Source: Macrostomum lignano (taxonomy: Eukaryota). From it: 58,892 nt of DNA. This document shows positions 18,906-58,892 of the stretch, one piece after another. The notes under the pieces were generated by a model. That model was not told the origin of the DNA and did no database searches. It saw only the letters and a list, made by a program, of their open reading frames with translations. Positions within the stretch are counted from its first letter, which is position 1; each line of letters opens with the position of its first letter. The stretch covers positions 1 through 58,892 of the forward strand of contig NIVC01004127.1 in the NCBI GenBank assembly GCA_002269645.1. The letters are read 5' to 3'. A program made the translations under genes and the position numbers.

Positions 18906-19877
18906 GCCAGACAGCACCCCAAGCAGAGCGCCCCCGTCCCCTTTTTGAAGGTCGTTTACCGCGGCGAAAACTGGCACTTTACTGTTTTCAAACTTTACTG
19001 GCCTCATTCAGTTCTGTAAAACTCACGAGTTTCAAGGAAACGTCAACTTTTTCAAAATCCAATACATACACTTTAAAATTAAATTTTGATTAAATCAATG
19101 AACTAGGATGAAAGTTACTCTGGAATTGGTGCAACAGTGTCAAACAAAAACTATCCCCCATAAATTTGATGGACTCCCATGCATGATAGGTTTCAGTATT
19201 TCAAGGCAGAGCTATATAACCCGATATGGGCCCACCTCTTGATGTGCACAGCTGCGAGATAATAGCGCAACAGGTAGCGAGAAAACCAGATTCCAAGCAC
19301 GACGTGTCGGGAGTCTACGTGGCTCGCTCGATGCATTTCAAAGAAACAAAAAACAGTTCAACAATGGGTGGATGGGAGGATGATTCAGCGTGCAGTAAGT
19401 AAGTGAGTCAGGGAATCAGAAAATATCCAATTACTGTTGCAAATGACCGTTCGTATTGGAACACCCAACAAGGATAGCATGACTGGATCATGCCATGTAA
19501 TAACAATTTTACAATAATTCATTAGATTTCAACAATTCATTTGAACTGGATAATTTCTAACATTTCTTTATCTTTTTTAGCCCTTAATTGGAAATTTAGT
19601 GGTCCTTGACATAAACAGTAGTTTAATATTGGGCGATATAAGCAGCATACAGGTGCAAACATGCTCTCGAATCGTCCAATCAATTCTATAACCAAAATTC
19701 ATTCACCAGATTCCTGATTTATTTTTCCTATTTTTCAATTGGCTTATACATGCGGTATGGGGACTTCACTCGCTCCCTGAAAAGTAGCTATGGTCGTAAA
19801 TTATGATTTTACCTGGGCGCCAAATCCCCTGTCATTGTACGAGTATGGGGCTTATATTGAAAATTAGTTAACACATG

Positions 19878-20090
19878 CAGGTGGATTCGGAAAACTCCGG
19901 CCCACGAACCACGAAGCCTCTCTATCCGGCCCTCGGGGTAACTTTGAAACTTCGCAATAGCAATCCGGGCCTATCCAGGCATGTGCTGTCTCTTCTCTGC
20001 TCTCCTCTCTCCCCTCTTAGCTCGTATCTCTCCTCTCATTTGAACTCTAATCAGCGCATTGCATTGTCTGCTATACAGTTTGTCTCTGCA
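19878..20090 (-). mobile_element. Short, diverged copy of the non-autonomous hAT family also at 28591 and 48755
   Basis: The reverse complement contains GGCCCGGATTGCTATTGCGAAGTTTCAAAG...GGCCGGATAGAGAGGCTTCG, matching 29114-29170 and 49363-49420. It has a short CT/AG-rich core. Confidence 0.7.
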
Positions 20091-20312
20091 GGTTTGCTTT
20101 GAAAAGAAATTTCTTAATAAATTAATCTGAAAACGAAAATCTAACACCCTGTTATACTCGTAGACTCGAACAAAACCATTTTGGAGTGTTATTGGTTTTA
20201 GTCTATACGCAGGCACACACTCACACAGGAGTGTACAGCGGTCCTAACTTTATTTATCGTTAGGCATGTACACTTCACTGCGCCTTGGGCTCATGGATTA
20301 GCCACAAATTAA

Positions 20313-21043
20313 GGGGGCGCTTCATAAGACCTAAATTTCACAACGCCTAAAGCACATGACTTCACATCACCTAAATTTCATAACGCCTAAACTCGAAAGT
20401 GCAGCCTCCTTCACATCGCCTAAATTTCATAACGCCTAAAATTTCTGCACGCTCTTTCACATCGCCTAAATTTCATAACGCCTAAAACCGAAAATGCATC
20501 CTACTTCATATCGCCTAAATTTCATATCGCCTAAATTTCATATCGCCTAAACTTCATATCGCCTAAATTTCATATCGCCTAAACTTCATATCGCCTAAAT
20601 TTCACATCGCCTAAACTTCATATCGCCTAAATTTCACATCGCCTAAACTTCATATCGCCTAAATTTCATATCGCCTAAATTTCATATCGCCTAAATTTCA
20701 TATCGCCTAAATTTCATATCGCCTAAATTTCATATCGCCTAAATTTCATATCGCCTAAATTTCACATCGCCTAAACTTCATATCGCCTAAATTTCACAAC
20801 ACCTAAAACTGAATGTGAAGGAGAGAAGCAAAGATTTTAGGCGTTGTGAAATTTAGGCGATATGAAATTTAGGCGATGTGAAAGAGCGTGCAAATATTTT
20901 AGGCGTTGTGAAATTTAGGCGATGTGAAGGAGGCTGCACTTTTGATTTTAGGCGTTGTGAAATTTAGGCGATATGAAATTTAGGCGTTGTGAAGTGTGGT
21001 GGTTTTAGGCGTTGTGAAATTTAGGTCTTATGAAAGCGTCCCC
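20313..21043. mobile_element. Foldback/MITE-like element with long imperfect TIRs and an internal 16-bp tandem repeat
   Basis: The left end GGGGGCGCTTCATAAGACCTAAATTTCACAACGCCTAAA is the inverted repeat of the right end TTTAGGCGTTGTGAAATTTAGGTCTTATGAAAGCGTCCCC. Direct flanks AAATTAA at 20306-20312 and 21044-21050. The (TTCATATCGCCTAAAT)n unit is inverted in the right arm. Confidence 0.85.
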
Positions 21044-21367
21044 AAATTAATGCGACTGCACTTGGAATCGAGCCTGAGCCGCTGGAAAACCATATTAAGG
21101 ACTCCTTGGCTTCAGGAGCCAGACTGGGCCAATAAGTGCGCTCCCCAGTCTGCGGGCCCCCTGGCAGCCAATAAGAATGCTCCAGCCGCCCATCTTCATC
21201 GGGCCGAATTCGCGAGTGGCGTTTGGGGTCGAAGAGGGGAGACATAATAACACGCAAAATATCCCCCATCGATTTGCTTCAGAAACGTCACGATCAGGAT
21301 GGCTATAAACGACTGAAATTTTTTAGTCTTCATACCCTGCATCGTTATAGACCTCAGCCTCTCATCC

Positions 21368-24300
21368 ATGCAGCTGTACCAGCTTCATCAGCAGCAGCCG
21401 AATTCGTTGCTGCCAAATTTGGCATTCGGATTCACCCAAGAGCAGGTGGCGTGCGTTTGCGAAGTTCTGCTTCAAGGCGGCAACGTCGAACGACTCGCCA
21501 GATTTCTATGGTCGCTGCCCCAATGCGAGCTGCTGAAACGCAACGAAAGCGTCGTGAAAGCCAGCGCCACAGTGGCTTTTCATCGCGGCAACTTCAAAGA
21601 GCTCTACAGGCTGGTTGAGAGTCACAATTTTGCACCGCAGAATCACGCTCGAATGCAGGTGAAGAGCCATTTTTCGCTTAAAATGCCATTTTTATTAGGA
21701 TACATATGCAAAAATTTATCGTTAAGGAAACTTTTAATTATGATTTGGCGCCATTTATGATGATCTGGCGTCATCTTAGATTATTTAGCGCCAGCTTAGA
21801 TGATTTGGCACCATCTTAGATGATTTGGCACCATCTTAGATGATTTGGCACCATCTTAGATTATCTGGCGCCATCTCAGGTGATTCGGCGCCATCTTAGA
21901 TTTTTTCGCGCCATGTTCGATGATTTGGCGCCATTTATGATGATTTCGTGCCACTTAACATGATTTGGCGCTATTTATGATTATTTGGCGCCGCTTAAGA
22001 TAATTTGGCACCTTTTTAGATGTCTTAGCGCCACTTAACATGATTCGGCGCCGTTTATAATCACCATAATCTTGGTAAGCACTTATGCCCTCCCTCTTCG
22101 CAGGACCTGTGGCTGCGCGCTCGCTACACGGAGGCCGAGCGCCTACGCGGCCGTCCCCTCGGCGCCGTTGGCAAGTACCGGGTGCGCAAGAAGTTCCCGC
22201 TGCCGCGCACCATCTGGGACGGCGAGGAGACATCCTACTGTTTCAAGGAGCGTTCGAGAAACGCCCTGAGAGACTGGTACTCCAGGAACCCCTACCCGGC
22301 CCCCAGGGAGAAGCGGGACTTGGCCGAGGCAACCGGCCTGACCACCACACAGGTGTCGAACTGGTTCAAGAATCGCAGGCAGCGAGACCGAGCAGCCGCC
22401 GCGGCCGCCGCCGCCGGGATTGGGCCGCCGGGGTCGCATAGCGGAGCTCGACCGATTCTGCGCGGCGTTGACGACACGGCTGACGATTTGTGCCAGGAGG
22501 AGGAGGCCTGTGAGGATGACACGAGCGATGCTGGAGCTGCTATGTGAGTGCAAGAGTGCAGAGAGGCTCTGTTGATGCTATAGAGGACAGAGCTATTTGA
22601 GGGGGTTTGAGGGTATTTTATATGACCTGTGGGTATTATTTTAGATCTGAGGGTATTCTTTTAAAACTGAGAGTTTTCTTTTGGAGCTGAGGGTGTTCGT
22701 TTGAAACTGAGGGTATTCTTTTAGATCTGAGGCTATTCCTTTGTATGTGAGGGTATTCTCTTTTATCTGAGGGTTTCTTTTGGATCTGAGGGTATTCTTT
22801 TGTATCTGAGGGTGTTCTTTTGGAACTGAAGCTATTCTTTTGGATCTGAGGTTATTCTTTTGGACCTGAGGGTATTATTTTGAAGCTGAGGGTATTCTTT
22901 TGGATCTGAGGGTATTCGTTTGAAACTGAGGGTATTCTTTTAGATCTGAGGCTATTCCTTTGTATGTGAGGGTATTCTCTTTTATCTGAGGGTTTCTTTT
23001 GGATCTGAGGGTATTCTTTTGTATCTGAGGGTGTTCTTTTGGAACTGAAGCTATTCTTTTGGATCTGAGGTTATTCTTTTGGACCTGAGGGTATTATTTT
23101 GAAGCTGAGGGTATTCTTTTGGATCTGAGGGTATTCGTTTGAAACTGAGGGTATTCTTTTAGATCTGAGGCTATTCCTTTGTATGTGAGGTTATTCTTTT
23201 GTATCTGAGGGTATTCTTTAAGATCTGAAGGTATTCCTTAAGATCTGAGGGTATTCTTTTGGATCTCAGGGTATTCTTTTGGATCGGAGGGTATTCCTTA
23301 AGATCTGAGGGTATTATTTTAGATCTGAGGGTATTCTTCTGGACCTGAGGGTATTAGTTTGAAGCTGAGGGTATTCTTTTACTTTCTCTTATTCTTGGGA
23401 AATTCTCAAAATCTTAGGGGTGGTATATTTTTAGTGAGGCACTTTTGCGACTCAGGAGAATGCTAGAGTCCCTAATTTAATTGATTGATTTAACCGAAAT
23501 TGTTTCATTTTTTTGTCAGAAAAAACATATCTCTGACAATTGATACTCTCAACCGAGAATATCATATATTATTCTCCATGGGCATGGCACAGGGTGAGGG
23601 CACATACGAGAGTGTACATGGGCTGACCGATTAGAATGTCGGGACTGCTGTACACAACGTGTGAGCGTGCAGTGTATTAATGTGTGCCTGTGTACAGCAT
23701 TGGCGCGCTTGTATGTACGAGGAGTCAGGAGTCAGCGGAATGAGGCAGAATTGCTGTCAACGCTGGTTGTTGTGCCAGGGTGTCACGGATGGGTCTAAAA
23801 CTTATAGAGAGCTGCTTGGGGAAGAGTTTTTGACTTCCAGGGGCTCCCGGCTCATTCATGCAGAGTCCGAAATCGAGGCCAAGCAATCTGTGGGAACAAA
23901 TGACGAATGCATCAAAAGGTAGCAGCAGACATATAGCTCGATATATGAAGCATGTTTTTGTTCTCACACATGTGGAAATATCCTATATTCCAACACCATC
24001 CATTACTATAACACCTTTCTTCCGGCTCGCATAGCACCATCATCCATTGTTTGTTTGAATGCAACTTGACTTCCGGGCGTACAAAGAGAGAGAGAGAGAA
24101 AAATATTAATAACTGCACCGATTCTCGGACACAAATGACACTTATACTTTGACAGTCATGACAGATCGACTGGGCACTAAGCTATAGTTAAATTTATTTG
24201 CGTTTTGGAACTTGGCTTGAATTATACTTGACCTCGGAAGGAAGCATGGTTTCGTGAGGTTTCCTCTTAGGATCCCAGTTCAAGGAGCTTAGATCCAATG

Positions 24301-27300
24301 AAGATCCCAGTTCAAGGAGCTCAGATCCAATGAATATCCCAGTTCAAGGAGCTCAGATCCCCTGAAGATCCAAGTTCAAGGAGCTCAGATCCCCTGAAGA
24401 TCCCAGTTCAAGGAGCTTAGATCCAATGAAGATCTCAGTTCAAGGAGCTCAGATCCAATGAAGATCTCAGTTCAAGGAGCTCAGATCCCCTGAAGATCCC
24501 AGTTCAAGGAGCTCAGATCCCCTGAAGATCCCACTTCAAGGAGCTTAGATCTAATGAAGATCTCAGTTCAAGGAGCTCAGATCCCCTGAAGATCCCAGTT
24601 CAAGGAGCTCAGATCCAATGAAGATCTCAGTTCAAGGAGCTCAGATCCCCTGAAGATCCCAGTTCAAGGAGCTCAGATCCCCTGAAGATCCCACTTCAAG
24701 GAGCTTAGATCTAATGAAGATCTCAGTTCAAGGAGCTCAGATCCAATGAAGATCTCAGTTCAAGGAGCTCAGATCCCCTGAAGATCCCAGTTCAAGGAGC
24801 TCAGATCCCCTGAAGATCCCAGTTCAAGGAGCTTCTAAAGATTCAATGAAGATCCCAGTTCAAGGAGCTCAGATCCAATGAAGATCTCAGTTCAAGGAGC
24901 TCAGATCCCCTGAAGATCCCAGTTCAAGGAGCTCAGATCCCCTGAAGATCCCAGTTCAAGGAGCTTAGATCTAATGAAGATCTCAGTTCAAGGAGCTCAG
25001 ATCCCCTGAAGATCCCAGTTCAAGGAGCTCAGATCCCCTGAAGATCCCACTTCAAGGAGCTTAGATCTAATGAAGATCCCAGTTCAAGGAGCTCAGATCC
25101 CCTGAAGATCCCAGTTCAAGGAGCTTCTAAAGATTCAATGAAGATCCCAGTTCAAGGAGCTCAGATCCCCTGAAGATCCCAGTTCAAGGAGCTCAGATCC
25201 AATGAAGATCCCAGTTCAAGGAGCTCAGATCCCCTGAGCTCCCTTGAGTTCAAGTATCTTGAATCCCCCGAAGATCTCAGTTAAAAAATAGTTGAACGTC
25301 GGATTCTAAAACGCCAGATTTAAGAAATTTCATTTTTGTAAAAAAATTAGAAGACACTAAAGTTCATAAAGCTGACTTTATTCAATTTTGTTTTCATGCC
25401 AGACACTCAAAATGCAGTTGACTCATCTAGCTCATGAAAAAATCTATGGAATAAACCGGGATTCTGCTTGCTTACATGCATTTCCGGTGTCCCTACAAAG
25501 TTTCAGAGTGAATCTTCACTCTTATACTGAATCAGACCGACGTATAACTATTTATTAGCTTCATATGATTTTTAATCAGTCGGTCTGGTATTTCGAAAAT
25601 TTTCTTAGTTAAACTGATAACTCCTCTGATAACTGAGGGAGCTTCCCCTCAGACAGAGAGGCAAACAGCTTTGTATTCGGGATTCCCTATCTAAAGCGGG
25701 ACATTTTTCATGGATGAATGAATGGTCATACTCATAATTCAACCCTTAAATAGCTACCTATCCTACCTGCATATAGCTTCAAACAGTTGCAAACTAACGG
25801 GCATGTATAACACAGATGCAACATAAAGATATCCAGGGACTTCCTCTTTTCCCTTTCAACGTGGTGGCGTAAAAATGTTTTCTAATTCGCTTTCAATTTT
25901 ATGATGTCAAATTTTCGGGAGCTCGGGTACACGGGTACTTTGTGCGATGATTTGTTTTACAAATCTAACATGTATTATAAAGGTATGCGGTCTTTATCAA
26001 AGCTTTGTAGACAGACAAGACTTTTAATTATGGGACTGTCTGTGTAATTGTGAACGAAAAGTGTCAAGAAAAGACGCGCTGGTTGTTAAATTAATTGTTA
26101 CGGAGAATGTTAAAGGACGCCCATATTTAGCCATAACTGTAAGTGCCAAGTTTAGGTTGTAAAGCTAAGTTTTCTTTGTCGAAACCTGATCCTTTTTTGA
26201 CTGCTGGACATCCGCTGTAGATAGCATGATTAATTATCATTAACTGTTAGATAGGATCATTAGCTGTTAGACAAGGATCATTAACTGTTAGATAAGGATC
26301 AGTACTTTTTAGATAAAGATCATTAGTTGTTAGACAAAGATCATTAGCTGTTAGATAGGGATCATTAGCTGTTAGACATGGATCATTAGCTGTTAGATAA
26401 GGATCAATAGCTGTCATATAGTCGTTAAATATCATCTGGGGGGTTTTTCTCGAAAATTGCGTAAGTTCTATGGTATGTTCGATCTTAAGTTAGAACTTTA
26501 CGCTCTGCGTAAGATCAATTTCTGAATATTAAGCCAGTTTCTCGAAACTCGCTTAGACTTTGCGTGACTTACGCGATTCGTAAGTCTAGTTAAGTCGACA
26601 AAATGTTGTTTATGGAAGAGAAGACAAAAAATCAAATCTAAAAAGCTAATTTTAATTATATGTATTTCTTGCTTTATTTTTTACCAACAGTAATTGCTAG
26701 ACAAAGATCAATAGCTGTTAGATAAAGATAATTAGCTGTTAGACATGGATCATTAGCTGTTAGACAAGGATCATTAACTGTTAGATAAGGATCAGTACTT
26801 TTTAGATAAAGATCATTAGTTGTTAGACAAATGTCATTAGCTGTTAAATAGGGATCATTAGCTGTTAGATAATTGGATCATTAGTTGTTAGACAAATATT
26901 ATTAGCTGTTAAATAGGGATCATTAGCTGTTAGATAAGGATCAATAGCTGTCATATAGTCTGGTCGTAAATTTCATACGTAAATTTCATCTGTCAGACAA
27001 GGTTTATATCTGCGTTTATATTTGCGGACAACAAACCCTTATGGCAAATCGAAAACGTTTCAATATATAATTTTACATGTGCCGATGCCTTATTAAACAA
27101 TCGAGTCAACCCGTGTCATATTCTAGGAAATCAGATTCGTGCTGCAAGCTGGGCGGGTCTCCACCGGCCCCGAAGGCGGAGCAGCCGGTGACAGCCAAGC
27201 TGAGTCTGTCTGTGAGCAGCTCGCACTACAATGTGCTCAACGCCTGCGCTAGCGGAAGCGGCGGATGCAGCGACACTTCGTTTTCCCCTCCGCAAGATCT

Positions 27301-42583: not shown

Positions 42584-43926
42584 TGAGGGTCATCCCAAAA
42601 GTTTCAGCAAACGCTTATTAATTTTCAACAAACGAGTGTCAGAACAATGAACATGTCAAAAACCTTCAAAATAACTTCGTTGACTTGAATTGTGCGCTCC
42701 CAGCGGCCAGGCAACTTTTAAACGCCATCAGCAGCGCCGGATTCGCACAGGTCTTTTGCAATGCGGCCGACCTCGCTGATCAGGTCATCCAGGCAATGGA
42801 AACAATGCCCTCAGAGCTGGTTCTTAAGCTTCGGAAAAAGGTCGAAATCGCAGGGACTGAGGTCTGGGGAGTAAGGAGGATGAGGCAGCACCTCCCACTG
42901 GTAGTCCCGCAGTAGGTCCTGCACAATGCGGGCTGTGTGCAAACTGGCATTGTTGTGCAGAAGAAGTGGACCAAGTTCCAGGGTTTGTGGCCGCTTTTTG
43001 CGCAAGGCAGGCCGAAGATGGTGAATAATGAAGCTCCAATAGTACTGTTGGTTGATGTTTTGGCCCTCAGGAACGCGGTGGATAAGAATAATGCCAAAGC
43101 TGTCGTAGCATGCGATGATCATCATCTTGTCGGCTCCCTTGGCGCGCCGCAGAACTGATGGTCTTGATGGCTAGGCAGAACCTTTCGACTGCCACTCGGA
43201 ATTCTGACTTTTGAGATTGGGCTCGTACGAACAGATCCAAGTCTCATCAAGCGTGACAATACGGTCTAGGAAAGCCAAACCCTCTCTCCTGAACCGATGC
43301 AGAAGCTGCTGAGCAGTTGTCACCTGGCGTGCCTTGTTGTCATCCGTGAGATGGTGCGGCACCCACCTGGCTGTGACCTTTTGCAGTCCAAGATCCTGGA
43401 TGAGGATCCGATGCACACTCGACGAGGGGATTCCGGACAGCTCAGCCATTTCTTCGCATATCCAACGGCGATTGATGTTCAGCAGCCCTTGGATCAACTC
43501 GATGTTCGACTCTGTGCGAGCTTCTTTTGGCCTTCCAGATCGTGGGTCATCCTCGACATCAGAGCGGCCATTCTTGAATCGACTGTACCAGTCGTACACG
43601 GCTCGCTGGCTCATCGCATTTGGCCCATGGGCCTGCAGCAACTGATGGTGAATTTGAGCTGCAGGGACACCACGAAGACATTCCATTTTAGTGTATGAGC
43701 GCTGCTCAAAGTTTGACGGAAATTCCATTTTATCATTGTCGGCCGATGTTTGATTTAGTATCTCACAAAATGTTCTTTATAAAACAGAATTTTGCAGCTA
43801 GAATGCTAAAAACTGACTCAGACACCCAAAATATGCTCATCTTTCGTGTGGTATAAGTGCTGTAGTCCTAAAAGTTGTCTATGGCACAAAATCATTCGAT
43901 TGCTGAAACTTTTGGGATGACCCTCG
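42584..43926 (-). mobile_element. Mariner transposon (irritans-like CGAGGG TIR), full length, inactivated
   Basis: 27-bp TIR (T/C)GAGGGTCATCCCAAAAGTTTCAGCAA with TA TSDs at 42582-42583 and 43927-43928. The transposase from 43728 has WVPHHL, DETW and YSPDLSPCDF motifs, in-frame stops at 43171-43173 and 42811-42813, and HDNA changed to HNNA. Confidence 0.95.
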
Positions 43927-45159: not shown

Positions 45160-47839
45160 AGCTAGAATAGTAGATTTTCGTAGCGATGTGCTGAGCAAAC
45201 CAACACCGGGTATGATGAAAGCAATGATTGAATCAGTTAGCTATGGAGACGATGTGTTTGGCGAGAATACCACTGTGATGGGTAAGTGTTTCTGGCATGT
45301 GTATTTATTAGTGCAAATCCTGTGCTTTTAAGCCACTTTTAGTTTTAGTGTCAGAAAAGACGTCATTTTAGTGTCAGAGATGCCCATTTTAGTGTCAGAG
45401 ATGCCACTTTTAGTGTCAGAGATGCCATTTTTAGTGTCAGAGATGTCACTTTTAGTGTCAGAGAAGAAGAAGACGCCACTTTTAATGTCAAAGATGCCAC
45501 TTTTAGTGTCAGAGACGCCAGTTTTAATGTTAGAGACCCTGATGTGTTCCTTATTACCAGTCCTCAACCGTAATCAAGGAACAATCACTTCTAGCTCAGT
45601 AGCTAGGCAACCCAGTATGTCAACAGAAGGTATTCAATTACCTTGAGTCCTTAACTGAGAGCTCTCGTCAATACTCCTTGTTCGTTGATCTCGCTATCAG
45701 TAGCGTCTGTCCTTCAGGAATTCCGGGCGCCGGTCAACAGTTGATCTGGTCCGCTCTTGCAGTTGTCTCCTTGACTTCTTGCCGGCCGGTAATCTGTAGT
45801 TCGGACCAATCGGAAGCCTACTCCTTCTAGTAGTGCCTCTATGCACTCTAGGTATGGCTCCGGAAACCACTGATAGTCCTCTAAGATCTATCAGGGGCAG
45901 TCCTTCTGGAGACTGCAACCAGTAGAGTCTAAACAGACTCAGGAGTCTCAACAGACTCACAATAAACTCAAGTCACTCTTGGACTTGAGCGAGACGTCTC
46001 TAACAACAACGGCGCAAATGAGTAAGGCTTACCGCAGGAACTCGACCACGTCTTCGAGTTGCTTCAGGAAGTCTGCTGCAGAGCTTCCTCTTCGGAGCTT
46101 TCTCTCTCGGAGATTCTTGGCTCCGGGTCCGTTCCGGACCACTTGTATTTATAGGCGTTCAGACCTCTCTCGAGGTCGTACATCACTGTCTTCGCAAATG
46201 TCAAAGGGTCACGATTCGGTGGCTGTCAAGCATGACAGGGTAGAAAGTTGCGCAACTAGTCTATTGTAAAAGCGCATGATTGGTTACCGTAGCTGGTAGA
46301 CTTTGATTGGTTCATCCGGGTGCAACCCGAGTGCAAACCAAATGATGACTTGAAGGTGGGGTTTGAATTGACAGTTGTTGGTCGCACGTGATTGGGTGAT
46401 TTCTAAAATTAGCATGCTCGAGGTCTCTCTCTTCCTATTGGTTAGTCCGAATATACTTATAGTTCAAAGCATACCTTATTCATGCTCTTCAATTTACTAC
46501 TAAATAAAATGTGTGAGTAGTACGTTAACACTTTTATGTCTTTTTTACGAAAGGTAGAACACTCTACAACCCCACTTTTAGTGCCAGAGACGCCACTTTT
46601 AGTGTCAGGGATGTCACTTTTAGTTCAGGGCCTCCACTGTTTTCGAAGCAACTTCAGCGCTTTTAGAAGATAAACTAATGTGCTTACATGTCTAATTTTA
46701 TTTCTAAAAAATGAACAGAACTGGAGTCGCGAGTCGCTAAAATGCTTGGCCAAGAAGCTGGACTATTTGTCACTAGCGGCACTATGGGCAACTTACTGCC
46801 CGTGATGTCGCACTGTAGGGAGCGAGGTTCAGAAGTTATCTTGGGCGATCTGTGTCATATTCATCTGTACGAACAGGTATTCTATTAACTATTTGAACTG
46901 ATTGAATAGCTGTATATAAAAATGTATTGATTTGATATTTTACTAGCCTGACAACAATCTTTGTCTTGCTCTAATCTCGAGTACTTTCCTCTTTGTCTAC
47001 TCTACTACTCTACTTCCATTGCTAAGGTCTTTGTTTTGCACTACTTTCGGTGCTAAGGTCTTTGTCTACTCCACTTCCATTGCTAAGTTCGTTATGTTGT
47101 ACTACTTCCAGTACTGAGGTCTTTGTCTACTTTACTTACATTGCTGTATTTTTCTTGCAGTACTTCCGGTGCTAAGGTCTTTGTTTTGCACTACTTTCGG
47201 TACTAAGGTCTTTGTTCACTCTACTTCCATTGGTGCCTATGTCTAGTATACTCCCGGGGCTAAGATCTTTGTGTTGCACTACTTTCAGTACTTGAAGTCT
47301 TAATCTTCCATTATTTAGGTCTTTGTTTTACTCTATTTTCGTTGCCAAAGTCTTTATTTTTGCCCTGCTTCCAGAATTGAGGCCCTTGTCTCGCTAACCT
47401 ACCTGTACTAAGGTCTTTGTCTCATTTGATTACCTGTATTAAAGTCTTGCATCGCTTAAGGACACTGCTTGAGGTCTTTGTCTCGAAACAATTTTGTCGT
47501 CTCCTCAGGTCTTTATAGAAGCTCAATGTTTTTATAACAAACAAATAAACATTTTCTCCATAGGGAAGTTTGGCCTCATTCGCCGGCGCGCACCACAGGG
47601 CGGTCAGCACCAATCCTGACGGCACCCTCTGCCTGGAGCAGTGCCGGCGCCTGATCCGCACCAATGCGGAGGACCCGCACTATCCAATCACCAGGGCGCT
47701 GTGCCTGGAGAACACGCACGGACTGGCCGGCGGCAAAGTGCTTCCCGTGGCTTACTTTGCCGAGGTGAGGGGATACGTATCGGTGTCTTTGTCTGTCTGT
47801 CTGTCTGTCTGTCTGTGTGTCTGTGTACTGTGGATCTTT

Positions 47840-47876
<37 letters not shown>

Positions 47877-47878
47877 TT

Positions 47879-47935
<57 letters not shown>

Positions 47936-50900
47936 GTGTCTGTCTGTGTGTGTATCTGTCTGTCTGTCTGTCTGTCTGTGTGTCTGTGTACTGTGTATCT
48001 TTGTGTCTGTCTGTGTGTGTGTGTCTTTCTGTCTGTCTGTGTGTCTGTCTGTCTGCCTGTCTTTCTGTTTGTCTGTCTCTGTTTGTCTGTCTCTGTTTGT
48101 CTGTCTCTGTCTGTCTGTCTGTCTGCCTGTCTTAGTGTCTGTCTGTCTGCCTGGCTGTCTGTCTGTCTGTCTGTCTTTCTGTAATTATCTCTCTGGGAGT
48201 CTGTCTGTAACAAAGTCTTAGTTTTCTGTCTTTCTGTAAGTTTTAGTCAATTTATCAATTTTATTGTCAATCCATACAAGACGAATACTGTACGCAGGCG
48301 AGCACTCATATACGCTCACACTGGGTGTACAGCGGTCCCACATTTGCATTTCAAATTGTCAGGCCTTGGTGGCTGGCCCTCATGGGTGTGAATGGCTGAA
48401 CAGCACATACAATAACAATTTTCGTGCACCACAAGCCCCAAATGATGTGGCCTCACACGGAGTGGAACCAGGGTAAGGGTCGTGGCGCGAGACGCGTTTA
48501 CCGCTAAACTGGCTCTTCCCTCCCCTAGCCAATGTTTGCCTGTCCGCCATCACTCCTATGCAATAAATTTCCCTATGCACTCCAACATTCGCAGGCCAGA
48601 GAGCTCTGCAACAGGTACGGCATGAAGCTGCACGTTGATGGAGCCAGACTGATCAATGCAGCCGTGGCTTTGGGTATCGACCCTATTGAGTATGGCAGAT
48701 ATGTCAGTTCAGTGACTATTTGCTTCTCAAAGGTGAGAATCTGAGGATCTAGTTCAGGGGTTGCAAGCTGTTTTCTTTTACCTCAAAGGCCAGATAAAGA
48801 ACCCAGCTCATAGCGTCGGGCTATGTAAGAGAGAATAGAGGATGAAAGAGGGGAGGAGAAGAGAGAGGGAAGAGAAGGGAAAAAGAGAGAAGATAGAAAA
48901 AGAGAGGAGAGAAGAGAGGAAAGAGGGGAGAGAAGAGAGGAGATAGAAGAGAGGAGAGAGAAGAGAGGAGAGAAGAGACAAAGAGGGAAGAGACGAGAAA
49001 GAAAAGAGGGGAGAGAGGAGAGGAGAGACAAAAGAGGGAAGAGAAGAGAGGAGAGGGGAGAGAAGAGAGGAGAGGAGAGAGAAAAAGAGGGAAGAGAAGA
49101 GAGGAGACGAGAGAGAATAAAGAGGGGAGAGAAGAGAGGAGAGGAGAGAGAGAGAAAAAGAGGGGAGAGAAGAGAGGAGAGGAGACAAAGAGGGAAGAGA
49201 AGAGACGAGACGAGAAAGAAAAGAGGGGCGAGAGGAGAGGAGAGACAAAAGAGAGAAGAGAAGAAAGGAGAGAGGAGAGAAGAGAGGAGAGAGGAGAGAA
49301 GAGAGGAGACGAGAGAGAAAAAAGATGAGAGAAGGGAGCTGAGAAGAGCCAAGCCTTGAGCGGGTCGGATTGCTATTGTGAAGTTTCAAAAGACCCAAGC
49401 GCCGAATAAAGAGGCTTCGCGGGTTTAAATTCGCCGCCCCCTGATCTCGTAGATGCAACTATGAATTCCTAGCAGTTTTTCTGCATGAATTCATTTCTCT
49501 GTTTTTTTCCAGGGTCTCGGCGCACCCGTCGGGTCCTGCATCGCATCGGATGCTGATACTATTAGTTAGTAAGTGCTGTCTATGTACTCTACGTGTACAC
49601 TGAATAACTCTCAGAATTGAAATTCCAAGCTGGCATTAGTCGGAAAAGTTCAAAATTGAATCCATCAAGGCTGAGTACGGAGTTGAAAATAACTTAGTAT
49701 TTTCTTGTTCTAAATTTTTGGCGCCTGTCAAAATAATTTCAGTTGCCGTCGAATTCGCAAAGCGCTCGGCGGCGCCGCCAGACAGCCTGGACTTTTGGCC
49801 GCTGCGGCCAGCTATTCGCTGGACGTAGCCAAGGACACCCTGTCAGCTGATCACGCCAATGCCCAGCTGATCTATTCAGGTTAGTTGGAAATTGTGCCAA
49901 TTTTTATTCACTTTTAGTTTAGTCAAAAAGAATTTTAAGGCAATTAAAAACGATAGTCATGTTGGTACAAAAGATGAGAGCCACATGATGCTACAATTTC
50001 TACAGATTTAAAAAATGCTACGAAGAGCTACAGAATTCCAAAAAGAGCTATTGGGTTCTACAAAGAGCTAGAGTGCTACAAAGAGCTACAAAATGTTACA
50101 AAGAGTTAAAGAGTGTTAGAAAGAGCTACAGTGTGCTACAAAGAGCTCAAGAGTGCTACAAAGAGCTACAGTGTGCTACAAAGAGCTACAGTGTGCTACA
50201 AAGAGCTACAGTGTGCTACAAAGAGCTACAGTGTGCTACAAAGAGCTACAGTGTGCTACAAAGAGCTACAGAGTGCAGAGTGCTACACAGAGCTACAGGG
50301 TGCCACACAGAGCTACAGAGTGCAAAGTGCTACACAGAGCTACAGGGTGCAGAGTGCTACACGGAGCTACAGAGTGCAGAGTGCTACACAGAACTACAGG
50401 GTGCAGAGTGCTACACGGAGCTACAGTGCAGAGTGCTACACGGAGCTACAGAGTGCAGAGTGCTACACGGAGCTACAGGGTGCTAAAAAGAGCTACAGAG
50501 TGATACAAAGAGCTACAGAGTGCTACAAAGATCCACAGGATACCACAAAGAAGTACAGAGTGCTACAAAGAGCTACAGAGTGCTGCAAAAAGCTACAGAA
50601 TGCTACAAAGAGCTACAGAAGGCTACACAGAGCTAAAGAATGCTACAAAGAGCTATAGAAGGCTACAAAGTGCTACAGAGTGACACAAAGAGCTATAGGA
50701 TGCTTCCAAACCTAGTTATATGTGTTATTGTGGTCAAAATACAATAAAGTTTTTCTCAATCTCATTCCGCACAGGTGTGTCGCAGGTCAACCTACCCGAC
50801 TGGCTGGTGTTTGAGAAGCCGCAGACCAATGTAATGCAAATTAAACTTACTAAGGATGCTCCAATAAGTATCGACCAACTGCAGACTATTATTGAAGAGG

Positions 50901-52458: not shown

Positions 52459-52528
52459 ATGTCTGCTTTAACTCCTCGAATGTCGGGAGCAATCGTCTGC
52501 CTCCTAGTGCTTATCGTCGGTGTACCAG
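52459..52528 (+). CDS. Constant first coding exon (signal peptide) of the MAM-like variable-exon gene
   Basis: ATG at 52459 reads MSALTPRMSGAIVCLLVLIVGVP, with a hydrophobic h-region and a canonical CAG|GTAAGT donor in phase 1. Confidence 0.8.
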
Positions 52529-52604
52529 GTAAGTGCAACGCTTTCGTTGCTTATTAAAATTACCCAATCAAAATATGAAAGACTTTAAATAAAGTATTCA
52601 ATAT

Positions 52605-52626
52605 TTGGCAAGGCTCGTTGCTCCAT
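52605..52626 (+). promoter_or_regulatory. Putative splicing docking site (TTGGCAAGGCTCGTTGCTCCAT)
   Basis: It is the reverse complement of a motif found upstream of all 12 downstream paralogous exons. The sequence match is seen directly; the function is inferred. Confidence 0.8.
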
Positions 52627-52954
52627 TCTCTATATAGTTGAAAAATTGGCTAATATGATAAAATAATTTTTTTCGAATGAGTTGCCTGAGTAGTTTAAAA
52701 ATATTGTCTTTAAATTTTTTTGAATGGGGCTAAGATGCGCATTTTTTCACGAATTTGTGATTCATTGTAACAAAACAAAATATGATAATTAATTATCTAA
52801 TTAATTTGCTTGAATTTATATTTAAAATCAGTAGCTTTAAGTTATTATAATGCGATTAGGAGTTAACGAGATTCTTTCATATCATACGCTCGTACATGAT
52901 CAATGTGTTTGCAAAAATTGTTGCTCTAGCGTGCATCGATTGCGCCTACTCTAG

Positions 52955-53339
52955 GGGTGCAAAATTCACTGGCTGTTTTTGACGATTCGGTGTCAGTTTC
53001 GTGCGACTTTGAACAGCAACATTCTGCTGCTAGTAGAAGTTCGTCAAAAACTGATTCTCAGTTCTGCAACTGGGTAGATTTAGCCTGGAAACCGGGCAGT
53101 GCTTGGCAGATTCGCTATCTGACAGAGTTCAACACTCAGGCTGTCTGTCTGCACGGCGGCTCAGCCAGACTGCAGAGTCCCTGGTGGATTGATTCTGCTA
53201 GTAGCAATTTCAGGCGTCAGAGTGCTCAGTGCTTGTCGTTTGCTTATCACGTAACTCCTAACAATCAATTAGGAGATTCATCGAAGTCTTCTATCGAAAC
53301 TGACTTACCTCAACTGGCTTTATTGAAGAATACTCACGG
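52955..53339 (+). CDS. Variable exon V1, N-terminal part of a MAM-like domain
   Basis: CTAG|GG acceptor. SCDFEQ...FCNWVD...WQIRY...ARLQSPW...QCLSFAYH...LALLKNTHG|GTAAGT. 385 nt (3n+1). Confidence 0.85.
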
Positions 53340-53653
53340 GTAAGTTTAGGTTTTTATTAACTCAAGGGAAAAACGTCTCTTGCCAACAGCACAAACTCGT
53401 GCATCTTTCTAACGATAGAAATCACTTAGTCAATTGACCTTTTTTCTCGGAAAGCATCCCTGACGACATGCATTGTTAAAACATAACATTACCACCTCTA
53501 ACAGGACTTGTGGCTTAGTTTTTTTAGTGATATCGCAATTAGTCCTTGTATAAGTTTATGGAGCAGCGAGTCTGCTCCGAGATTTCCTACATAAAGTCTA
53601 CTGCTTATAATTATTAATATGCTTTATGCAGTGTTGGAGGCAGTTGCAGTCAG

Positions 53654-54021
53654 TACTGGAGCTAGTGTAATGGAAGAAAGTCCCTATCAACGGATCGCTG
53701 GTCAAGCGACGGTTATAATCGGGAATTAGAATGGCGTCGATTTGCTATTCATAGCAGTCTGAACGCTGGTTCTCCTGCCTCGTCAGTTAACGTTAGAACC
53801 GGATCTGCAATTACGAATAGTTGGTGCACAGCTGGATTGATTCCTTCACCGTCGGTTGCTGTGTCTGGTCGGTTGTTAAGCGACTGGGTGCGCAGCGGCC
53901 GCGATAGCAGCAATGGACTCTGCTTGTCGTTTAGTTATCGTATCGACTATGGACCAGAACGACGGAAAAGCGATGTTGACGATACCGCCGCAGTGTTGGC
54001 TCTTCTAAGGCGATCGTCGGG
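53654..54021 (+). CDS. Variable exon V2 (5' boundary uncertain; in-frame TAG at 53663 suggests an indel or pseudo-exon)
   Basis: C...RWSSDGYNRELEWR...SGRLLSDWV...LCLSFSYRID...LALLRRSSG|GTTAGA. Confidence 0.6.
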
Positions 54022-54161
54022 GTTAGAAAAATGCTTTGATTTATGTTCTGTTTTTTGCATTTGCTTAGCAACGAGCCTTAGCTTAATTGATTGTGTTCGT
54101 ACTTAGCTTGGCTGGTAACTTGAGAAAATTATTTATAATTACCAACGCTTCGATTGCGCAG

Positions 54162-54525
54162 CGAGTTCACTTTCGTCGTCTGGTAGTGCTAACCGAATGG
54201 TTATTAAACAGCTCACCTGCAGTGGTAGCGGTTTCGGCAGTAGTTCTCAATCTTGTAATTGGTTCAACGATATCGGCTATAATACTGAGGCGCATTGGAA
54301 GTTGGCTAGCATTGCCGATTCGGATGGTAGCGCTGCCACCGCTGCCACTTATCGAACCAGTTATTGCGCAGTTGTCACTGGCGGTGCTACTAGCGCACAG
54401 CTTGTATCGGCTAGATTTGTTAGCCTATTCATTGCTAGCAGTTCGGTCAGCGAAGGCTGCATGCAGTTCTCTTACCAGCTAGTTGATCGGCAGAGTCAAT
54501 TGCAATTGTTGAAGCGCAATTCCGG
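54162..54525 (+). CDS. Variable exon V3, MAM-like N-terminal part
   Basis: GCAG|CG acceptor. KQLTC...CNWFNDIGYNTEAHWKLA...ARFVSLF...CMQFSY...LLKRNSG|GTATGA. 364 nt (3n+1). Confidence 0.85.
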
Positions 54526-54675
54526 GTATGAGAATTGAAAAACACTATTATAGCTATATAACTAGTCATTATTAATGTCCTGTTGCAACGAGCCTTGTAG
54601 AAAATTAGTCAGAATTGGGAGTTTAGCAGTTACACGATTTTACAGTGATTGATTGCTGCTTTCACTGTATTTCAG

Positions 54676-55018
54676 CCTTTGGTTTATCAAACAGCAGATT
54701 TAGTGGCTTTGACATTAAAGCTTTGCAATGTCAAAGCAATGGCGCTGATACATGTCTATGGAGCGATGACAATGGCTACAATACAAAAGCGCACTGGAAG
54801 CTGGCTGCTGTGCAGTCTTCGCCAGACTCTCCGTTACACCGATCAGCTTTCTGCATGGTTCCAATAAATCCTAGCGTCACGGCTGCGACCTCAATTTCGG
54901 CTAGATTTGTCAGCTTATTTCTCTCCGAACCGATTGAGTCCGCCTGCTTGCAGTTTGTGTATCAGTTGGTACCTGCAGCCTCAGCTCCATCGCTCCAGTT
55001 GCTTAAACGTCACTCTGG
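54676..55018 (+). CDS. Variable exon V4, MAM-like N-terminal part
   Basis: TCAG|CC acceptor. ALQC...CLWSDDNGYNTKAHWKLA...ARFVSLF...CLQFVY...LLKRHSG|GTAAAT. 343 nt (3n+1). Confidence 0.85.
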
Positions 55019-55135
55019 GTAAATTGCACAGGATTCCCCTTTAATTTTTTTTCGAATAGGATGGAGCAACGAAACCTTGATTGACCAAAACTCTGTTGAT
55101 AATTTAGTAAAATAATGGCTTGAAAAATAATCTAG

Positions 55136-55445
55136 TTACCGGTCTATCTGATGAAGCTGTAAAACAATTGCACTGCGATAGTGGATCCCGCTGCTATTGG
55201 CTAGATGACAGTTACAATACTGACGCCCACTGGCAGTTGGCTACTGTTACTGAGAGTTCTCGCTTTCAAACGCACTATTGCCTAATTAGAGATGTGTCGG
55301 CGCTTAAACGTGTAACTAAGGCTCGTTTTGTTAGCCGCTTTGTTACTGACAGCAAAGTGGGCTGTTTGCACTTTCGCTATCTGATCAGTCAGCAGGATGA
55401 TGAGTTAAGTGGTGCGGATCTGCACCTGCTTCGACGGAATCGAGG
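55136..55445 (+). CDS. Variable exon V5, MAM-like N-terminal part
   Basis: CTAG|TT acceptor. KQLHC...CYWLDDSYNTDAHWQLA...ARFVSRF...CLHFRY...LLRRNRG|GTATGG. 310 nt (3n+1). Confidence 0.85.
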
Positions 55446-55614
55446 GTATGGCGCTGGTTTCTTTTGTACTCTTAGTTATGATGCTGCATGATTACTTACT
55501 GTTATTTTAAACTTGTTCAAACAAACACGAGCAACGAGCCTTGACTAGCTTGCAGTTTCTTTATAAACTGATAATTATATAGTCCAGGTTATACATTAGA
55601 TGGCTCTCTTGCAG

Positions 55615-55900
55615 CAACTAAAATAGATCTGCAGTGCACAGCTCGAGGTCACTGTGCCTGGCTCAACGACGTTTTCAATCGTCTGCACTGGACCTTGGCA
55701 GACGTTGGTGCAGTTGCTGGTGGTAACACTGGCCTGTGTCTTGTACCTCAGTCGGTGTCGTCATCTTCTGTTGGTAGCGATGCAGGCGGTCAATTTGTCA
55801 GTCCGACGGTATTTTCTAAAGTTAGCGGTCAGATGTGTCTTCAGTTTGTCTACTGGACTGCTGGTCGAGCTAAATTGAATCTATTAAAGCGCAGTTTAGG
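55615..55900 (+). CDS. Variable exon V6, MAM-like N-terminal part (alternative same-phase acceptors give starts at 55588 or 55600)
   Basis: DLQC...CAWLNDVFNRLHWTLA...GQFVSPTV...MCLQFVYW...LLKRSLG|GTATGA. 286 nt (3n+1). Confidence 0.8.
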
Positions 55901-56042
55901 GTATGATTTATCATTTTAGCGATGCTTGAACCGTCAAGATATATTTAGTTAATTTGATTTGATGCAACGAGCCTTGTCTAAAGTTTCTGTTTATAATAGA
56001 TCTTTAACGACTACATTGACTCTTTCGGAAAATCAATTTTAG

Positions 56043-56397
56043 CCGGTACATTAGCTGCAGTGTCAGTACCCGAGTTAACGTGCATAAGTACGTCAGCTAG
56101 CCCTTGCACTTGGCGCGACGATCAAGATAATATTGACGCTCATTGGCGCGCCTCCTTGTATCCGTCGGCTGCATTTCAGTCACCGCGATGTCTAGTGCCG
56201 GAGCCAAGCGTTTTGTCGGGTTCTAGCTACTCTAGCTCACGACCCTTAACCGTAGCTCGGTTTGTTAGCCAATGGCTTACTGGCAGACGTGGTGATATGT
56301 GTCTTCAGTTTGCCTATCGAATTGATCAACCGATGGCTACTCGTAAAGAGACAACTGTTGCTGGTGCTGGATTAAGCTTGCTGAAACGGAGCAGAGG
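56043..56397 (+). CDS. Variable exon V7, MAM-like N-terminal part
   Basis: TTAG|CC acceptor. PELTC...CTWRDDQDNIDAHW...ARFVSQW...MCLQFAY...LLKRSRG|GTATGA. 355 nt (3n+1). Confidence 0.85.
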
Positions 56398-56555
56398 GTA
56401 TGAGTTGGCTATAAAAATAATGCAAAAAACGTGAAATAACTGGAGTAACGAGCTTTTGTCATAAAATTTCAGTTAGTGTCCTTGGAATTTTGGCTTAAAT
56501 ATTGTAAGAGATGCATGTCTAATTATTTAACTGCTAGACTGTTTTTCCACCTCAG

Positions 56556-56874
56556 CGACGCTTGAACAGTTGTCCTGCCACGCTGGCGGTCACTGCAGTT
56601 GGCGTGATGATTTCGACAATAAAGGCGCCCACTGGGTGTCCGCCCTGGATGCTGCAAGCGACGCGTCCTCGTTAGGCAGCGGCAGATCGCACCTGTGCTT
56701 GGTTCAGAGCGGACCTCAGCCGCACAGTTTAGTGACTGGTCGCTTTGAGAGTCACTGGATTGCTGCCACTAAATCTGATAATGAGCAGCAGTTGTCGCCA
56801 TCTGTTTGCCTCACGTTCAGCTACTTGACGGCGCCGCGGGAGGTGTCGCTGAGTTTGCTCAAGCGAAACTGGGG
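56556..56874 (+). CDS. Variable exon V8, MAM-like N-terminal part
   Basis: TCAG|CG acceptor. EQLSC...CSWRDDFDNKGAHW...GRFESHW...VCLTFSY...LLKRNWG|GTAAAA. 319 nt (3n+1). Confidence 0.85.
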
Positions 56875-56987
56875 GTAAAAGAAATTGAGTTTAAATTTTG
56901 TTTACTTTGTGAGCAATGAGCTTTGCCATTAGTTATTGCTTGTATTTTAAAATTGTTTTTGTGACGCTTGCCTGAACATGAATTCAG

Positions 56988-57345
56988 CTTCTAAAATGGC
57001 TGACGAACGTCTTGCTTGTTCTTCGAGCACTTCGGCAATCTGTGCTTGGCGAAACGATCTTGACAACAAAGACGGCGCTTGGAAAATGACGCTGGAGCCG
57101 CCTGGCTTTAGCCGCGCAGCACTCTCGTCTTACTGTTTGGTTCCTATCAGGCGTCCAATGTCATCTGGCAGGAGTTCTGTCAGTCTAGTTGCTGAATTTC
57201 ATAGCGCTTGGGTGTCTGGAGGGACGACAGGATCAGACCCTAGTGCTGGTCAATTGTGTCTTCAGTTTGCATTTAGAGTGAAGGATTCGTTCCATTCTTC
57301 TAGTGCCAGCGCGGCAAAACTGGTTCTGCTAAAACGCGTCTCTGG
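56988..57345 (+). CDS. Variable exon V9, MAM-like N-terminal part
   Basis: TCAG|CT acceptor. ERLAC...CAWRNDLDNKDGAW...AEFHSAW...LCLQFAF...LLKRVSG|GTAGGA. 358 nt (3n+1). Confidence 0.85.
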
Positions 57346-57471
57346 GTAGGAGTTTTTGCATCATGTTTATTCCCGCTTCTTTAGGCGAGCCTTGCCAAGT
57401 TTATTGAATTTGATAGCACACCTGTGGTAGCTGAAATTGTAACCGTTTTTTATGTCTTTTTTTCAAATAAG

Positions 57472-57814
57472 TTACCCACTGCGTTTCGGTTGACTGCTCC
57501 TCAAAATTGCCAAATGTTTGCACATGGAGCGACGGTCAATTCAATCGAGCTGCCAACTGGAAGGTCGCAATTGACTCCAATAGTCGCTGTGCTTCCTATT
57601 GCCTCGTTCCAAATAAGATTAGGTCTCAAGCGATGACGTCATCACGTAGCTCTTCGGCACAGGCTTACACTGGAAGCTTTCTTAGTGGCTGGATTGTCGC
57701 TGAAGAGTCAAGACAGAATCCAATGTGTCTGCAATTCAATTACAAGTTTGTTCTAGCAGAGCCAGTAATATCCAAGCCTGGATTGCAACTGGCTTTGTTA
57801 AAGCGTACATTTGG
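57472..57814 (+). CDS. Variable exon V10, MAM-like N-terminal part
   Basis: TAAG|TT acceptor. SVDCSSKLPNVCTWSDGQFNRAANWK...GSFLSGW...MCLQFNYKF...LLKRTFG|GTATGT. 343 nt (3n+1). Confidence 0.82.
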
Positions 57815-57936
57815 GTATGTTTTTGGATTAAATTGGAGCAACGAGTCTTATTAATCAATTTTTAGCTTGATAAAAAATGCATCAAGTTTAATTAGTATAT
57901 GTAAAGCATCTAGAACTCGTAAATGCCCTCTTATAG

Positions 57937-58255
57937 CCGTCTCAATTGATTGCTCATCGACCTCGCCTACTTTTTGCACTTGGAGCGATTCACCTTTTAA
58001 TCGGGCAGCCAATTGGAAGGCCGCAATCGATCCCAGCGTTCGTAGCGGTGGTAGAAGCGCGTCCTATTGCTTGATTCCAAATAGACCAGTAGCTACAGAA
58101 GACACTACTCACAGCGGTAGCTTTCTTAGTAATTGGATAACCAAAACGAAAGAATCCGGTTCGCCAGAGCAGCAGATGTGTGTTCAGTTTGCGTACAAGT
58201 TTATTGGTTCGCCAATGACTAGAATGCATCTGGCTCTGTTAAAGCGTTCATATGG
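57937..58255 (+). CDS. Variable exon V11, MAM-like N-terminal part
   Basis: ATAG|CC acceptor. SIDCSSTSPTFCTWSDSPFNRAANWK...GSFLSNW...MCVQFAYKF...LLKRSYG|GTAAGG. 319 nt (3n+1). Confidence 0.85.
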
Positions 58256-58385
58256 GTAAGGTCTAAAACCTGTCAGGTAAAAGTGAGCTTTTTACAGTAG
58301 AGTTTCTTTGAGCAACGAGTCCTTGTGTATGCTGCTTTTTCATTTTTGCTATAGGTACGTTTGTACTTGTTTTATTGCGTTATAG

Positions 58386-58715
58386 TGACATGTCTTGCCT
58401 CTTCGATTAATTGCTCGTCCAATTCGCCTATGCTCTGCTCGTGGAGCGATTATCCATTCAATCGAGCCGCTAATTGGAAGGCAACAATCGATTCTAATAG
58501 TCGTTCGTCCTCTTATTGTTTAATTCCTAATGCGGCTTTGGTGATGCCTATTAATGCAGCGTCTGAACAAGGATTTGCGGCCAGCTTTATTAGCGGTTGG
58601 ATCGCTGGAAAAAACCAACGCTCGATGTGCTTGCAGTTTGCGTATAAATTTTAGTGTCATCTCAATTGCCTGAACGTAGGCAGTCTTCTCTGGCATTATT
58701 GAAACGTTCATTTGG
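58386..58715 (+). CDS. Variable exon V12, MAM-like N-terminal part (one T missing in the run at about 58649-58652)
   Basis: ATAG|TG acceptor. SINCSSNSPMLCSWSDYPFNRAANWK...MCLQFAYKF, then a frame shift to ...LALLKRSFG|GTATGC. Adding one T gives 331 nt (3n+1). Confidence 0.78.
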
Positions 58716-58892
58716 GTATGCTTTTATTTCAACTGATGCGATAAAAAAATGAGTACAAAAAGGTTCTGCTGCCCCCATAGATTAAAAAATTTCGTCAGGA
58801 GCGATGCATTGAAAAGCCTTAAAATGCGTCGTATGTTTGGTCATGAAGCTTTACTCCGGGCCTCTGTGAGACTGTATATTCGGTGCAACAAA

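Follow-up and report, generated by a model that had tools for sequence, protein, structure and literature searches.

Putative docking and selector elements in a tandem array of MAM-domain exons of the flatworm Macrostomum lignano

The stretch of DNA analysed here (the window) is the entire contig NIVC01004127.1 (58,892 bp) of assembly GCA_002269645.1 from Macrostomum lignano. According to published papers, this is the Mlig_3_7 assembly of a free-living flatworm; it is PacBio-based and strongly redundant, and its annotation was made from RNA-seq (PMC5730564). The last part of the window holds a constitutive first exon and a tandem array of homologous variable exons (V1 to V12) of a gene for a MAM-domain membrane protein, together with a single 22-nucleotide (nt) docking site and a series of intronic selector elements (S1 to S12) complementary to it. 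Our reading, to which we assign a probability of roughly 85%, is that the variable exons are the first 12 of the 14 mutually exclusive exons of one cluster (cluster A), that their choice is controlled by docking-selector pairing, and that this pairing is under selection.

All elements of the cluster are on the forward strand. Exon 1 (52459-52528) provides the start codon and the signal peptide (MSALTPRMSGAIVCLLVLIVGVP plus 1 nt), and ends at a CAG|gtaagt donor followed by a phase 1 intron; the N-terminus of the transcript-based protein model P0136 is identical to it. The docking site (docking site A, TTGGCAAGGCTCGTTGCTCCAT) lies 77 nt 3′ of exon 1, at 52605-52626, and occurs only once in the window. 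V1 (52955-53339, 385 nt) encodes the N-terminal part of a MAM domain, and both its acceptor and its donor match model P0136. V2 (53632-54021) has the donor gttaga and an acceptor that agrees with another database model, P0121. The acceptors of V3 to V12 were inferred from intron phase and open frame; the exons are V3 at 54162-54525 (364 nt), V4 at 54676-55018 (343 nt), V5 at 55136-55445 (310 nt), V6 at 55615-55900 (286 nt), V7 at 56043-56397 (355 nt), V8 at 56556-56874 (319 nt), V9 at 56988-57345 (358 nt), V10 at 57472-57814 (343 nt), V11 at 57937-58255 (319 nt) and V12 at 58386-58715.

A profile of the 12 cluster A exons, run against 1.84 billion representative proteins, led to P0136, an annotated M. 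lignano model; this exhaustive search succeeded where word-indexed protein searches with V4 alone, or with all the exons joined, gave no match. The locus of P0136 is NIVC01000034.1 (hereafter L002), a near-identical second copy of the gene, which contains the full cluster A of 14 exons. All 14 fit one profile (E = 1e-11 to 1e-37) and are 286-391 nt long, and the two copies are collinear across the exon array. Relative to L002 the window is without one nt at 53678, in V2, and one at 58648, in a T run of V12, with frameshifts as the result; both positions are in short homopolymer runs, and the frameshifts are probably assembly errors of a redundant contig rather than marks of dead exons.

The way in which these exons can be joined is constrained by the reading frame. 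Every cluster A exon has a length of 1 mod 3, and the 12 in the window end in ..LLKR..G with GG|gt. When neighbouring exon pairs are joined a stop is reached 2-19 codons past the junction in 13 of 13 cases, and when cluster A is skipped entirely a stop is reached at codon 38. Since the lengths are all 1 mod 3, so that either zero or two exons lead to a premature stop, exactly one cluster A exon would be needed. The RNA-seq-based P0136 (one model only) does take one exon per cluster: it consists of exon 1, V1, one 160-nt exon from a second cluster (cluster B, described below) and the last exon, which completes the MAM domain and adds a transmembrane helix and a PPxY-containing tail. The array is not a multi-domain repeat, because no cluster A exon accounts for a complete domain: single variable exons match the N-terminal 83-95 of the 158 positions of the Pfam MAM profile (PF00629) and remain under threshold, while the complete P0136 (32.3 bits) and P0217, a full-length relative (29.1 bits), exceed the gathering cut-off of 26.4 bits over profile positions 1-158. 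A single-sequence AlphaFold model had a mean predicted local distance difference test (pLDDT) score of 42 and was unusable for the fold. From its sequence, the gene product is predicted to be a type I membrane protein, in which the exons jointly build one extracellular MAM domain and no other.

A complement of the docking site is present in every intron preceding V2 to V12. These selectors are found at 53557-53581 (S2; predicted duplex free energy, dG, of −32.3 kcal/mol), 54066-54084 (S3, −27.0, with a one-base bulge), 54580-54599 (S4, −28.4), 55060-55089 (S5, −28.2), 55528-55549 (S6, −32.1, a perfect complement over 15 nt), 55959-55979 (S7, −30.5), 56440-56462 (S8, −31.3, with one bulge), 56907-56929 (S9, −34.2, the strongest), 57383-57398 (S10, AGGCGAGCCTTGCCAA, which pairs with the 5′ half of the docking site), 57833-57855 (S11, −29.2) and 58309-58327 (S12, −27.5, with a one-base bulge). 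They are placed 46-93 nt 5′ of their variable exons, and the introns between exons are only 113-292 nt long. With S13 (−31.0 kcal/mol) and S14 (−30.0 kcal/mol), which were located in L002, 13 of the 14 cluster A introns hold a selector, and their energies span a narrow range of −27 to −34 kcal/mol. By comparison, shuffled introns come to ~−13 kcal/mol, with means between −12 and −16 and no value below −25.5 (S2 to S12: −27.0 to −34.2), and the best among 698 background tiles of the window reaches −26.0 kcal/mol. A putative weak selector before V1 (S1, AGGAGTTAACGAGATTCTTTCAT, 52858-52880, dG −17.5 kcal/mol) is doubtful: it is indistinguishable from a shuffled intron (mean −14.8, standard deviation 2.3), and was missed by an alignment blind to the type of mismatch.

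The docking site also stands out when no prior knowledge of its position is used. In an unbiased scan, in which each 24-nt window of a 9.2-kb part of L002 was paired with all the inter-exon regions, docking windows have a median dG of −31.1, the next best elsewhere −19.4, and the background −12.2 kcal/mol; docking site A is the only outlier of the cluster A scan. All the duplexes cover docking positions 10-15 (the core CTCGTT), and the selectors use different, overlapping registers of the 22-nt site; the predicted duplexes bear out what the preliminary description of this DNA had proposed, namely that selectors occupy shifted, overlapping parts of the docking site around that core. Some 78% of the docking-selector cells are paired in register, as compared to 33-46% after a slide of 1-3 columns. 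No significant local structure sequestering docking site A was detected (z = −1.05). Overall, the complementarity is overwhelmingly beyond chance.

A weak docking-complementary site (−21.9 kcal/mol) at 58797-58828, near the contig end, was considered as S13 and rejected: the true S13 (ATGGAGCAATGAGCCTT) is at 16472-16501 of L002, 35 nt past the point at which the contig of the window ends.

It could be argued that the selectors resemble each other through recent duplication or gene conversion, with no selection. The array clearly arose by tandem duplication, and neighbouring selectors share states (S8 with S9, S11 with S12). However, whole introns are not near-identical among units: they are unalignable outside the selector, which is the sole conserved island (mean column identity 29%). 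Likewise, the conservation of the selectors does not derive from recent copying, because the exons share only 18-56% amino-acid identity, and conversion tracts limited to 15 nt across 13 introns would be implausible. We consider this account highly unlikely. Even more improbable, to the point of being nearly negligible, is the notion that docking site and selectors are DNA elements for a somatic rearrangement of the exon array. They are indeed inverted repeats at the level of DNA, but recombination between inverted repeats would flip exons instead of joining them; the splice sites and phases are of the ordinary kind, splicing alone accounts for the transcript model, the two genomic copies are collinear, and changes compatible with G-U pairing are meaningful only in RNA.

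Independent information comes from the rest of the gene. Downstream of cluster A, L002 carries cluster B (17403-25241), an array of ~19-20 tandem homologous exons (an approximate number) of 150-185 nt that encode the middle of the MAM domain and end in ..DFK|gt; those with an identified acceptor are again 1 mod 3 in length. The unbiased scan recognizes here a docking site B (AAATTTGGCAGCGGGGAAGACTTCAAGGTACC, L002 17706-17737; median −28.4 kcal/mol, against a background of −10.8 with a standard deviation of 2.2), and selectors at −25 to −35 kcal/mol are present in 19 of the 20 regions 5′ of cluster B exons. Because the gene repeats the same logic with an unrelated sequence, cluster B gives strong independent support to RNA pairing. 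It also bears on the alternative that the selectors are binding sites of splicing factors (enhancers or silencers within the intron, GCAACGAGCCTTG) that were duplicated together with the exons, their complementarity being incidental. The distance from selector to acceptor is similar throughout the array, and the Dscam model needs protein factors anyway (PMC6071210). Against this, a perfect 22-nt reverse complement right after the constitutive exon is unexpected by chance, S2, S9, S10 and S13 alter the core of the motif and yet still pair, the registers on the docking site are shifted between selectors, and cluster B shares the logic and not the sequence. We regard binding sites of this kind as a very unlikely explanation.

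Docking site B includes a pseudo exon end and donor (GACTTCAAG|GTA). A masking of the preceding exon's donor by cluster B selectors was considered and discarded, as it suits just 1-3 of 19 exons. Docking site A (window 52601-52609) and docking site B (L002 17708-17715) start with the same ATTTGGCA, which could be due to a common origin or to a protein partner common to the two.

The profile search also returned proteins of Paragonimus miyazakii, P. kellicotti and Schistosoma bovis, plus one chromosome-level trematode assembly. In the corresponding loci (L003-L006), homologous MAM-exon units are repeated in tandem, with 4 to 13 or more of them per array. They are like the M. lignano array in their homologous exons and in their end phase (in L004, the locus examined, exon ends share the GG|gt phase), while trematode introns are longer. 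The trematode gene models P0123, P0124, P0126, P0127, P0131, P0141 and P0145 chain several alternative exons into one protein; P0217, in turn, has the same plan as P0136, in which a signal peptide and a MAM domain are followed by a transmembrane segment and a PPxY-bearing tail.

We have also studied the substitutions that distinguish the selectors from the perfect complement of the docking site. The preliminary description had maintained that most of them convert a canonical pair into a G-U pair, and had taken this as a sign of selection on an RNA duplex. The changes that it listed are all present: 9A>G and 14C>T in S2, 19C>T in S7, C>T at 7, 15 and 19 in S8, C>T at 10 and 15 in S9 (one of them within the core, AATGAG), A>G at 8 and 9 in S10, and 14C>T in S11. 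The bulges that it assigned to S1, S5, S8 and S12 were likewise found, while those of S3, S6 and S9 had been overlooked. Its single clear mismatch, in S5, exists as an A.C mismatch (S5 has an extra A plus a G>A change), but is accompanied by two disruptive changes that had escaped notice, 4G>A in S7 and 18G>A in S11. The statement that most differences are compatible with wobble pairing is correct within the paired segments and not across all 22 positions, where a mismatch-blind alignment counts 31 transversions against 21 wobble-type transitions, in addition to 4 disruptive transitions and 14 indel columns, with the transversions mostly concentrated at the selector ends, where homology stops.

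If only internal isolated mismatches are considered (those with a match on either side, in a local alignment that ignores the kind of mismatch), cluster A shows 9 wobble-type transitions, 0 disruptive transitions and 0 transversions, irrespective of alignment settings; 8 of the 9 are within the window. A neutral expectation was derived from the sequence adjacent upstream in the two genomic copies, which is ~93% identical, with a ratio of transitions to transversions of 59:71. The resulting neutral wobble share of ~0.28-0.31 gives p~1e-5 to 1e-4 for the 9:0:0 distribution, or 0.011 if transitions only are counted; when clusters A and B are pooled the wobble excess still has p~2e-3 at kappa 2. 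Across the cluster itself, L002 and the window differ by three 1-nt indels only, two of which are the frameshifts in V2 and V12, with zero substitutions for a comparison of selectors and flanks. At the single CpG of the core there are two C>T and zero G>A changes.

The most serious alternative to our reading is that the duplexes are real and the G-U bias is simply the neutral spectrum of T- and G-rich introns, with no information on selection for pairing. The composition of the introns (A.31, C.14, G.16, T.40) gives (T*G)/(A*C) = 1.46; on a sense strand skewed in this way towards T and G, C>T and A>G are favoured even without selection. While the 9:0:0 count of cluster A clearly exceeds the neutral expectation, the remaining tallies do not. 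In our own tally of the mismatch-blind alignments, 16 of 21 changed C become T (null.63-.77) and 5 of 23 changed A become G (null ~.37), values near a T-rich HKY null, and the internal mismatches of cluster B (9 wobble-type, 3 disruptive, 11 transversions) show no enrichment and many transversions. A strand asymmetry, with dG lower on the plus than on the minus strand in 11 of 12 and then 13 of 14 cluster A selectors (S5 being the sole selector with greater stability on the minus strand), was dropped as evidence: the test is non-significant, with 15 of 20 in cluster B and 74-75% in shuffled introns (74% for the T-rich ones).

The tallies that fit the neutral null weigh against our reading, as do some further observations. 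The wobble bias of cluster A rests on 9-10 events, some of them shared by descent (position 15 of S8 and S9; S11 and S12). No orthologous locus with the docking site was found, so that changes are seen from one side only, within one genome and against a single docking sequence. S1 is non-significant although V1 is the cluster A exon used in the transcript model. Finally, energy and k-mer scans that recover the M. lignano site gave no docking-site outlier in the trematode loci L004, L005 and L006, these loci being incomplete and the method presuming a single docking site of ~24 nt. With so few events, the wobble bias of cluster A lends modest support to the duplex model without proving it. On balance we believe that a purely neutral origin of the bias is unlikely, though clearly less so than the alternatives discussed above.

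The view that the selectors work by pairing as RNA with the docking site, and not as a motif for DNA or protein recognition, is nevertheless strongly supported, because of the unique docking outlier, the selector islands, the second cluster, the exon phases and the transcript model with one exon per cluster. In this respect the conclusion of the preliminary description holds, mainly on evidence other than the substitution spectrum, its wobble argument being the weaker part. We envision that docking site A in the pre-mRNA would pair with one selector at a time, since all selectors occupy the same central docking bases and only a single duplex could form; this duplex would loop out the intervening exons and bring the chosen acceptor beside the exon 1 donor. 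Selection would then act on pairing, with changes from G-C or A-U to G-U being tolerated in the helices; the selectors differ from each other in their register, their bulges and their strength. From the analogy to Dscam exon 6, such duplexes would be expected to form in vivo, to control the choice of exon and to exclude the downstream variable exons.

These results can be compared with the known systems. As outlined in the part of PMC6071210 that recounts Graveley (2005), the exon 6 cluster of insect Dscam1 has, like cluster A, one docking site in the intron that directly follows the 5′ constitutive exon, a selector 5′ of each variable exon, all in competition for the same docking bases, and tandem homologous exons for part of an extracellular recognition domain, with several clusters per gene. 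The Dscam1 cluster has 48 exons, a 66-nt docking site and Ig domains, as compared to 14 exons, 22 nt and a single MAM domain in M. lignano. The flatworm case is further set apart by its phylum (Platyhelminthes), an unrelated protein, very short introns and the frame safeguard of lengths of 1 mod 3, and is known here from sequence. In Dscam exons 4 and 9, 14-3-3zeta, Mhc and MRP1 of insects competing pairings also pick one exon (PMC6071210, PMC4691838), but the docking site is downstream of the array, whereas both docking sites of M. lignano are upstream. More generally, the docking-selector systems known otherwise belong to insect genes, and in most of them the docking site follows the array (PMC6071210). 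Ivanov and Pervouchine (2018, PMC6071210) have proposed that competing structures originate when a stem-loop in an intron is duplicated in part. Theirs is an evolutionary model and not a described locus; it fits an array in which selectors were evidently copied with the exons while the docking arm remained single.

Full-text literature searches retrieved no description of the M. lignano locus or of its MAM gene family. On our reading the locus is a docking-selector cluster outside the arthropods, in a new phylum and in a new protein family. Large clusters of this type are documented mainly in arthropod genes, and their mechanism, their origin and the role of pairing strength are debated (PMC6071210, PMC8791459). 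The locus offers a compact, independent example: it has two clusters, its docking site measures 22 nt and its introns 113-292 nt, and M. lignano is an animal with established transgenesis (PMC5730564). It would therefore permit direct tests of how duplex strength, register, bulges and G-U pairs relate to exon usage, and of how such a switch originates by tandem duplication. A further implication is that flatworms, schistosomes and lung flukes among them, may have a family of hypervariable membrane proteins with MAM domains that has gone unrecognised.

A broader scenario can be offered tentatively, as one that we find somewhat less than evenly probable. The gene would be a Dscam-like generator of diversity independent of that of arthropods, in which two docking-selector systems, with 14 x ~19-20 exons (~270 combinations), rebuild nearly the whole of the one MAM domain at the N-terminus of a membrane receptor. 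The array, with its intron phases, would be shared with trematodes and so predate the separation of free-living and parasitic flatworms, and the switch with a single docking site would be specific to the Macrostomum lineage. If expression of the isoforms were stochastic, animals would have here a second solution to the diversity needed for cell-surface identity or recognition.

Some minor sequence features occur in and around the array. A mini hairpin (GCAACG-CTTT-CGTTGC, 52535-52550) is located 6 nt past the exon 1 donor. One of its arms is the selector core; the other, with one flanking base per side (TCGTTGCT, 52544-52551), is the docking core. It resembles the stem-loop of the Ivanov and Pervouchine model, and could be a relic of an ancestral stem-loop or a competitor for the docking site. 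V5 holds AAGGCTCGTT (55318-55327), which matches 10 nt of the docking site, in its core region, exactly and at the same time provides codons for K-ARF in the conserved ARFVS motif; the docking site may have been derived from exon sequence, or this segment may act as a decoy for selectors. V10 to V13 carry TGGAGCGA...GCCAA (codons W-S-D ... ANW; window 57520-57555 and 57980-58010; L002 15066, 15523, 15983 and 16610), which is able to pair with the docking site at its two ends, leaving a loop between them, at −23 to −27 kcal/mol; this pairing is probably a by-product of conserved coding sequence.

A search of the window against Rfam gave no known RNA family. A threonine aldolase gene (45190-48750, forward strand) lies directly upstream of the MAM gene, and P0121 merges it with exon 1, V2 and portions of V3 and V11; this is a fused and only partly spliced gene model, and the fusion fits the polycistronic, trans-spliced precursor transcripts reported in M. 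lignano. Long simple or tandem repeats are present between the aldolase exons and the MAM gene (47780-48220, 48780-49460 and 50070-50660); they include a CTGT/GT-rich microsatellite, CT-rich low-complexity sequence and a coding-like tandem repeat of ~30 nt. Farther upstream, on the reverse strand, is a fragment with a mariner-type helix-turn-helix (43171-43728).

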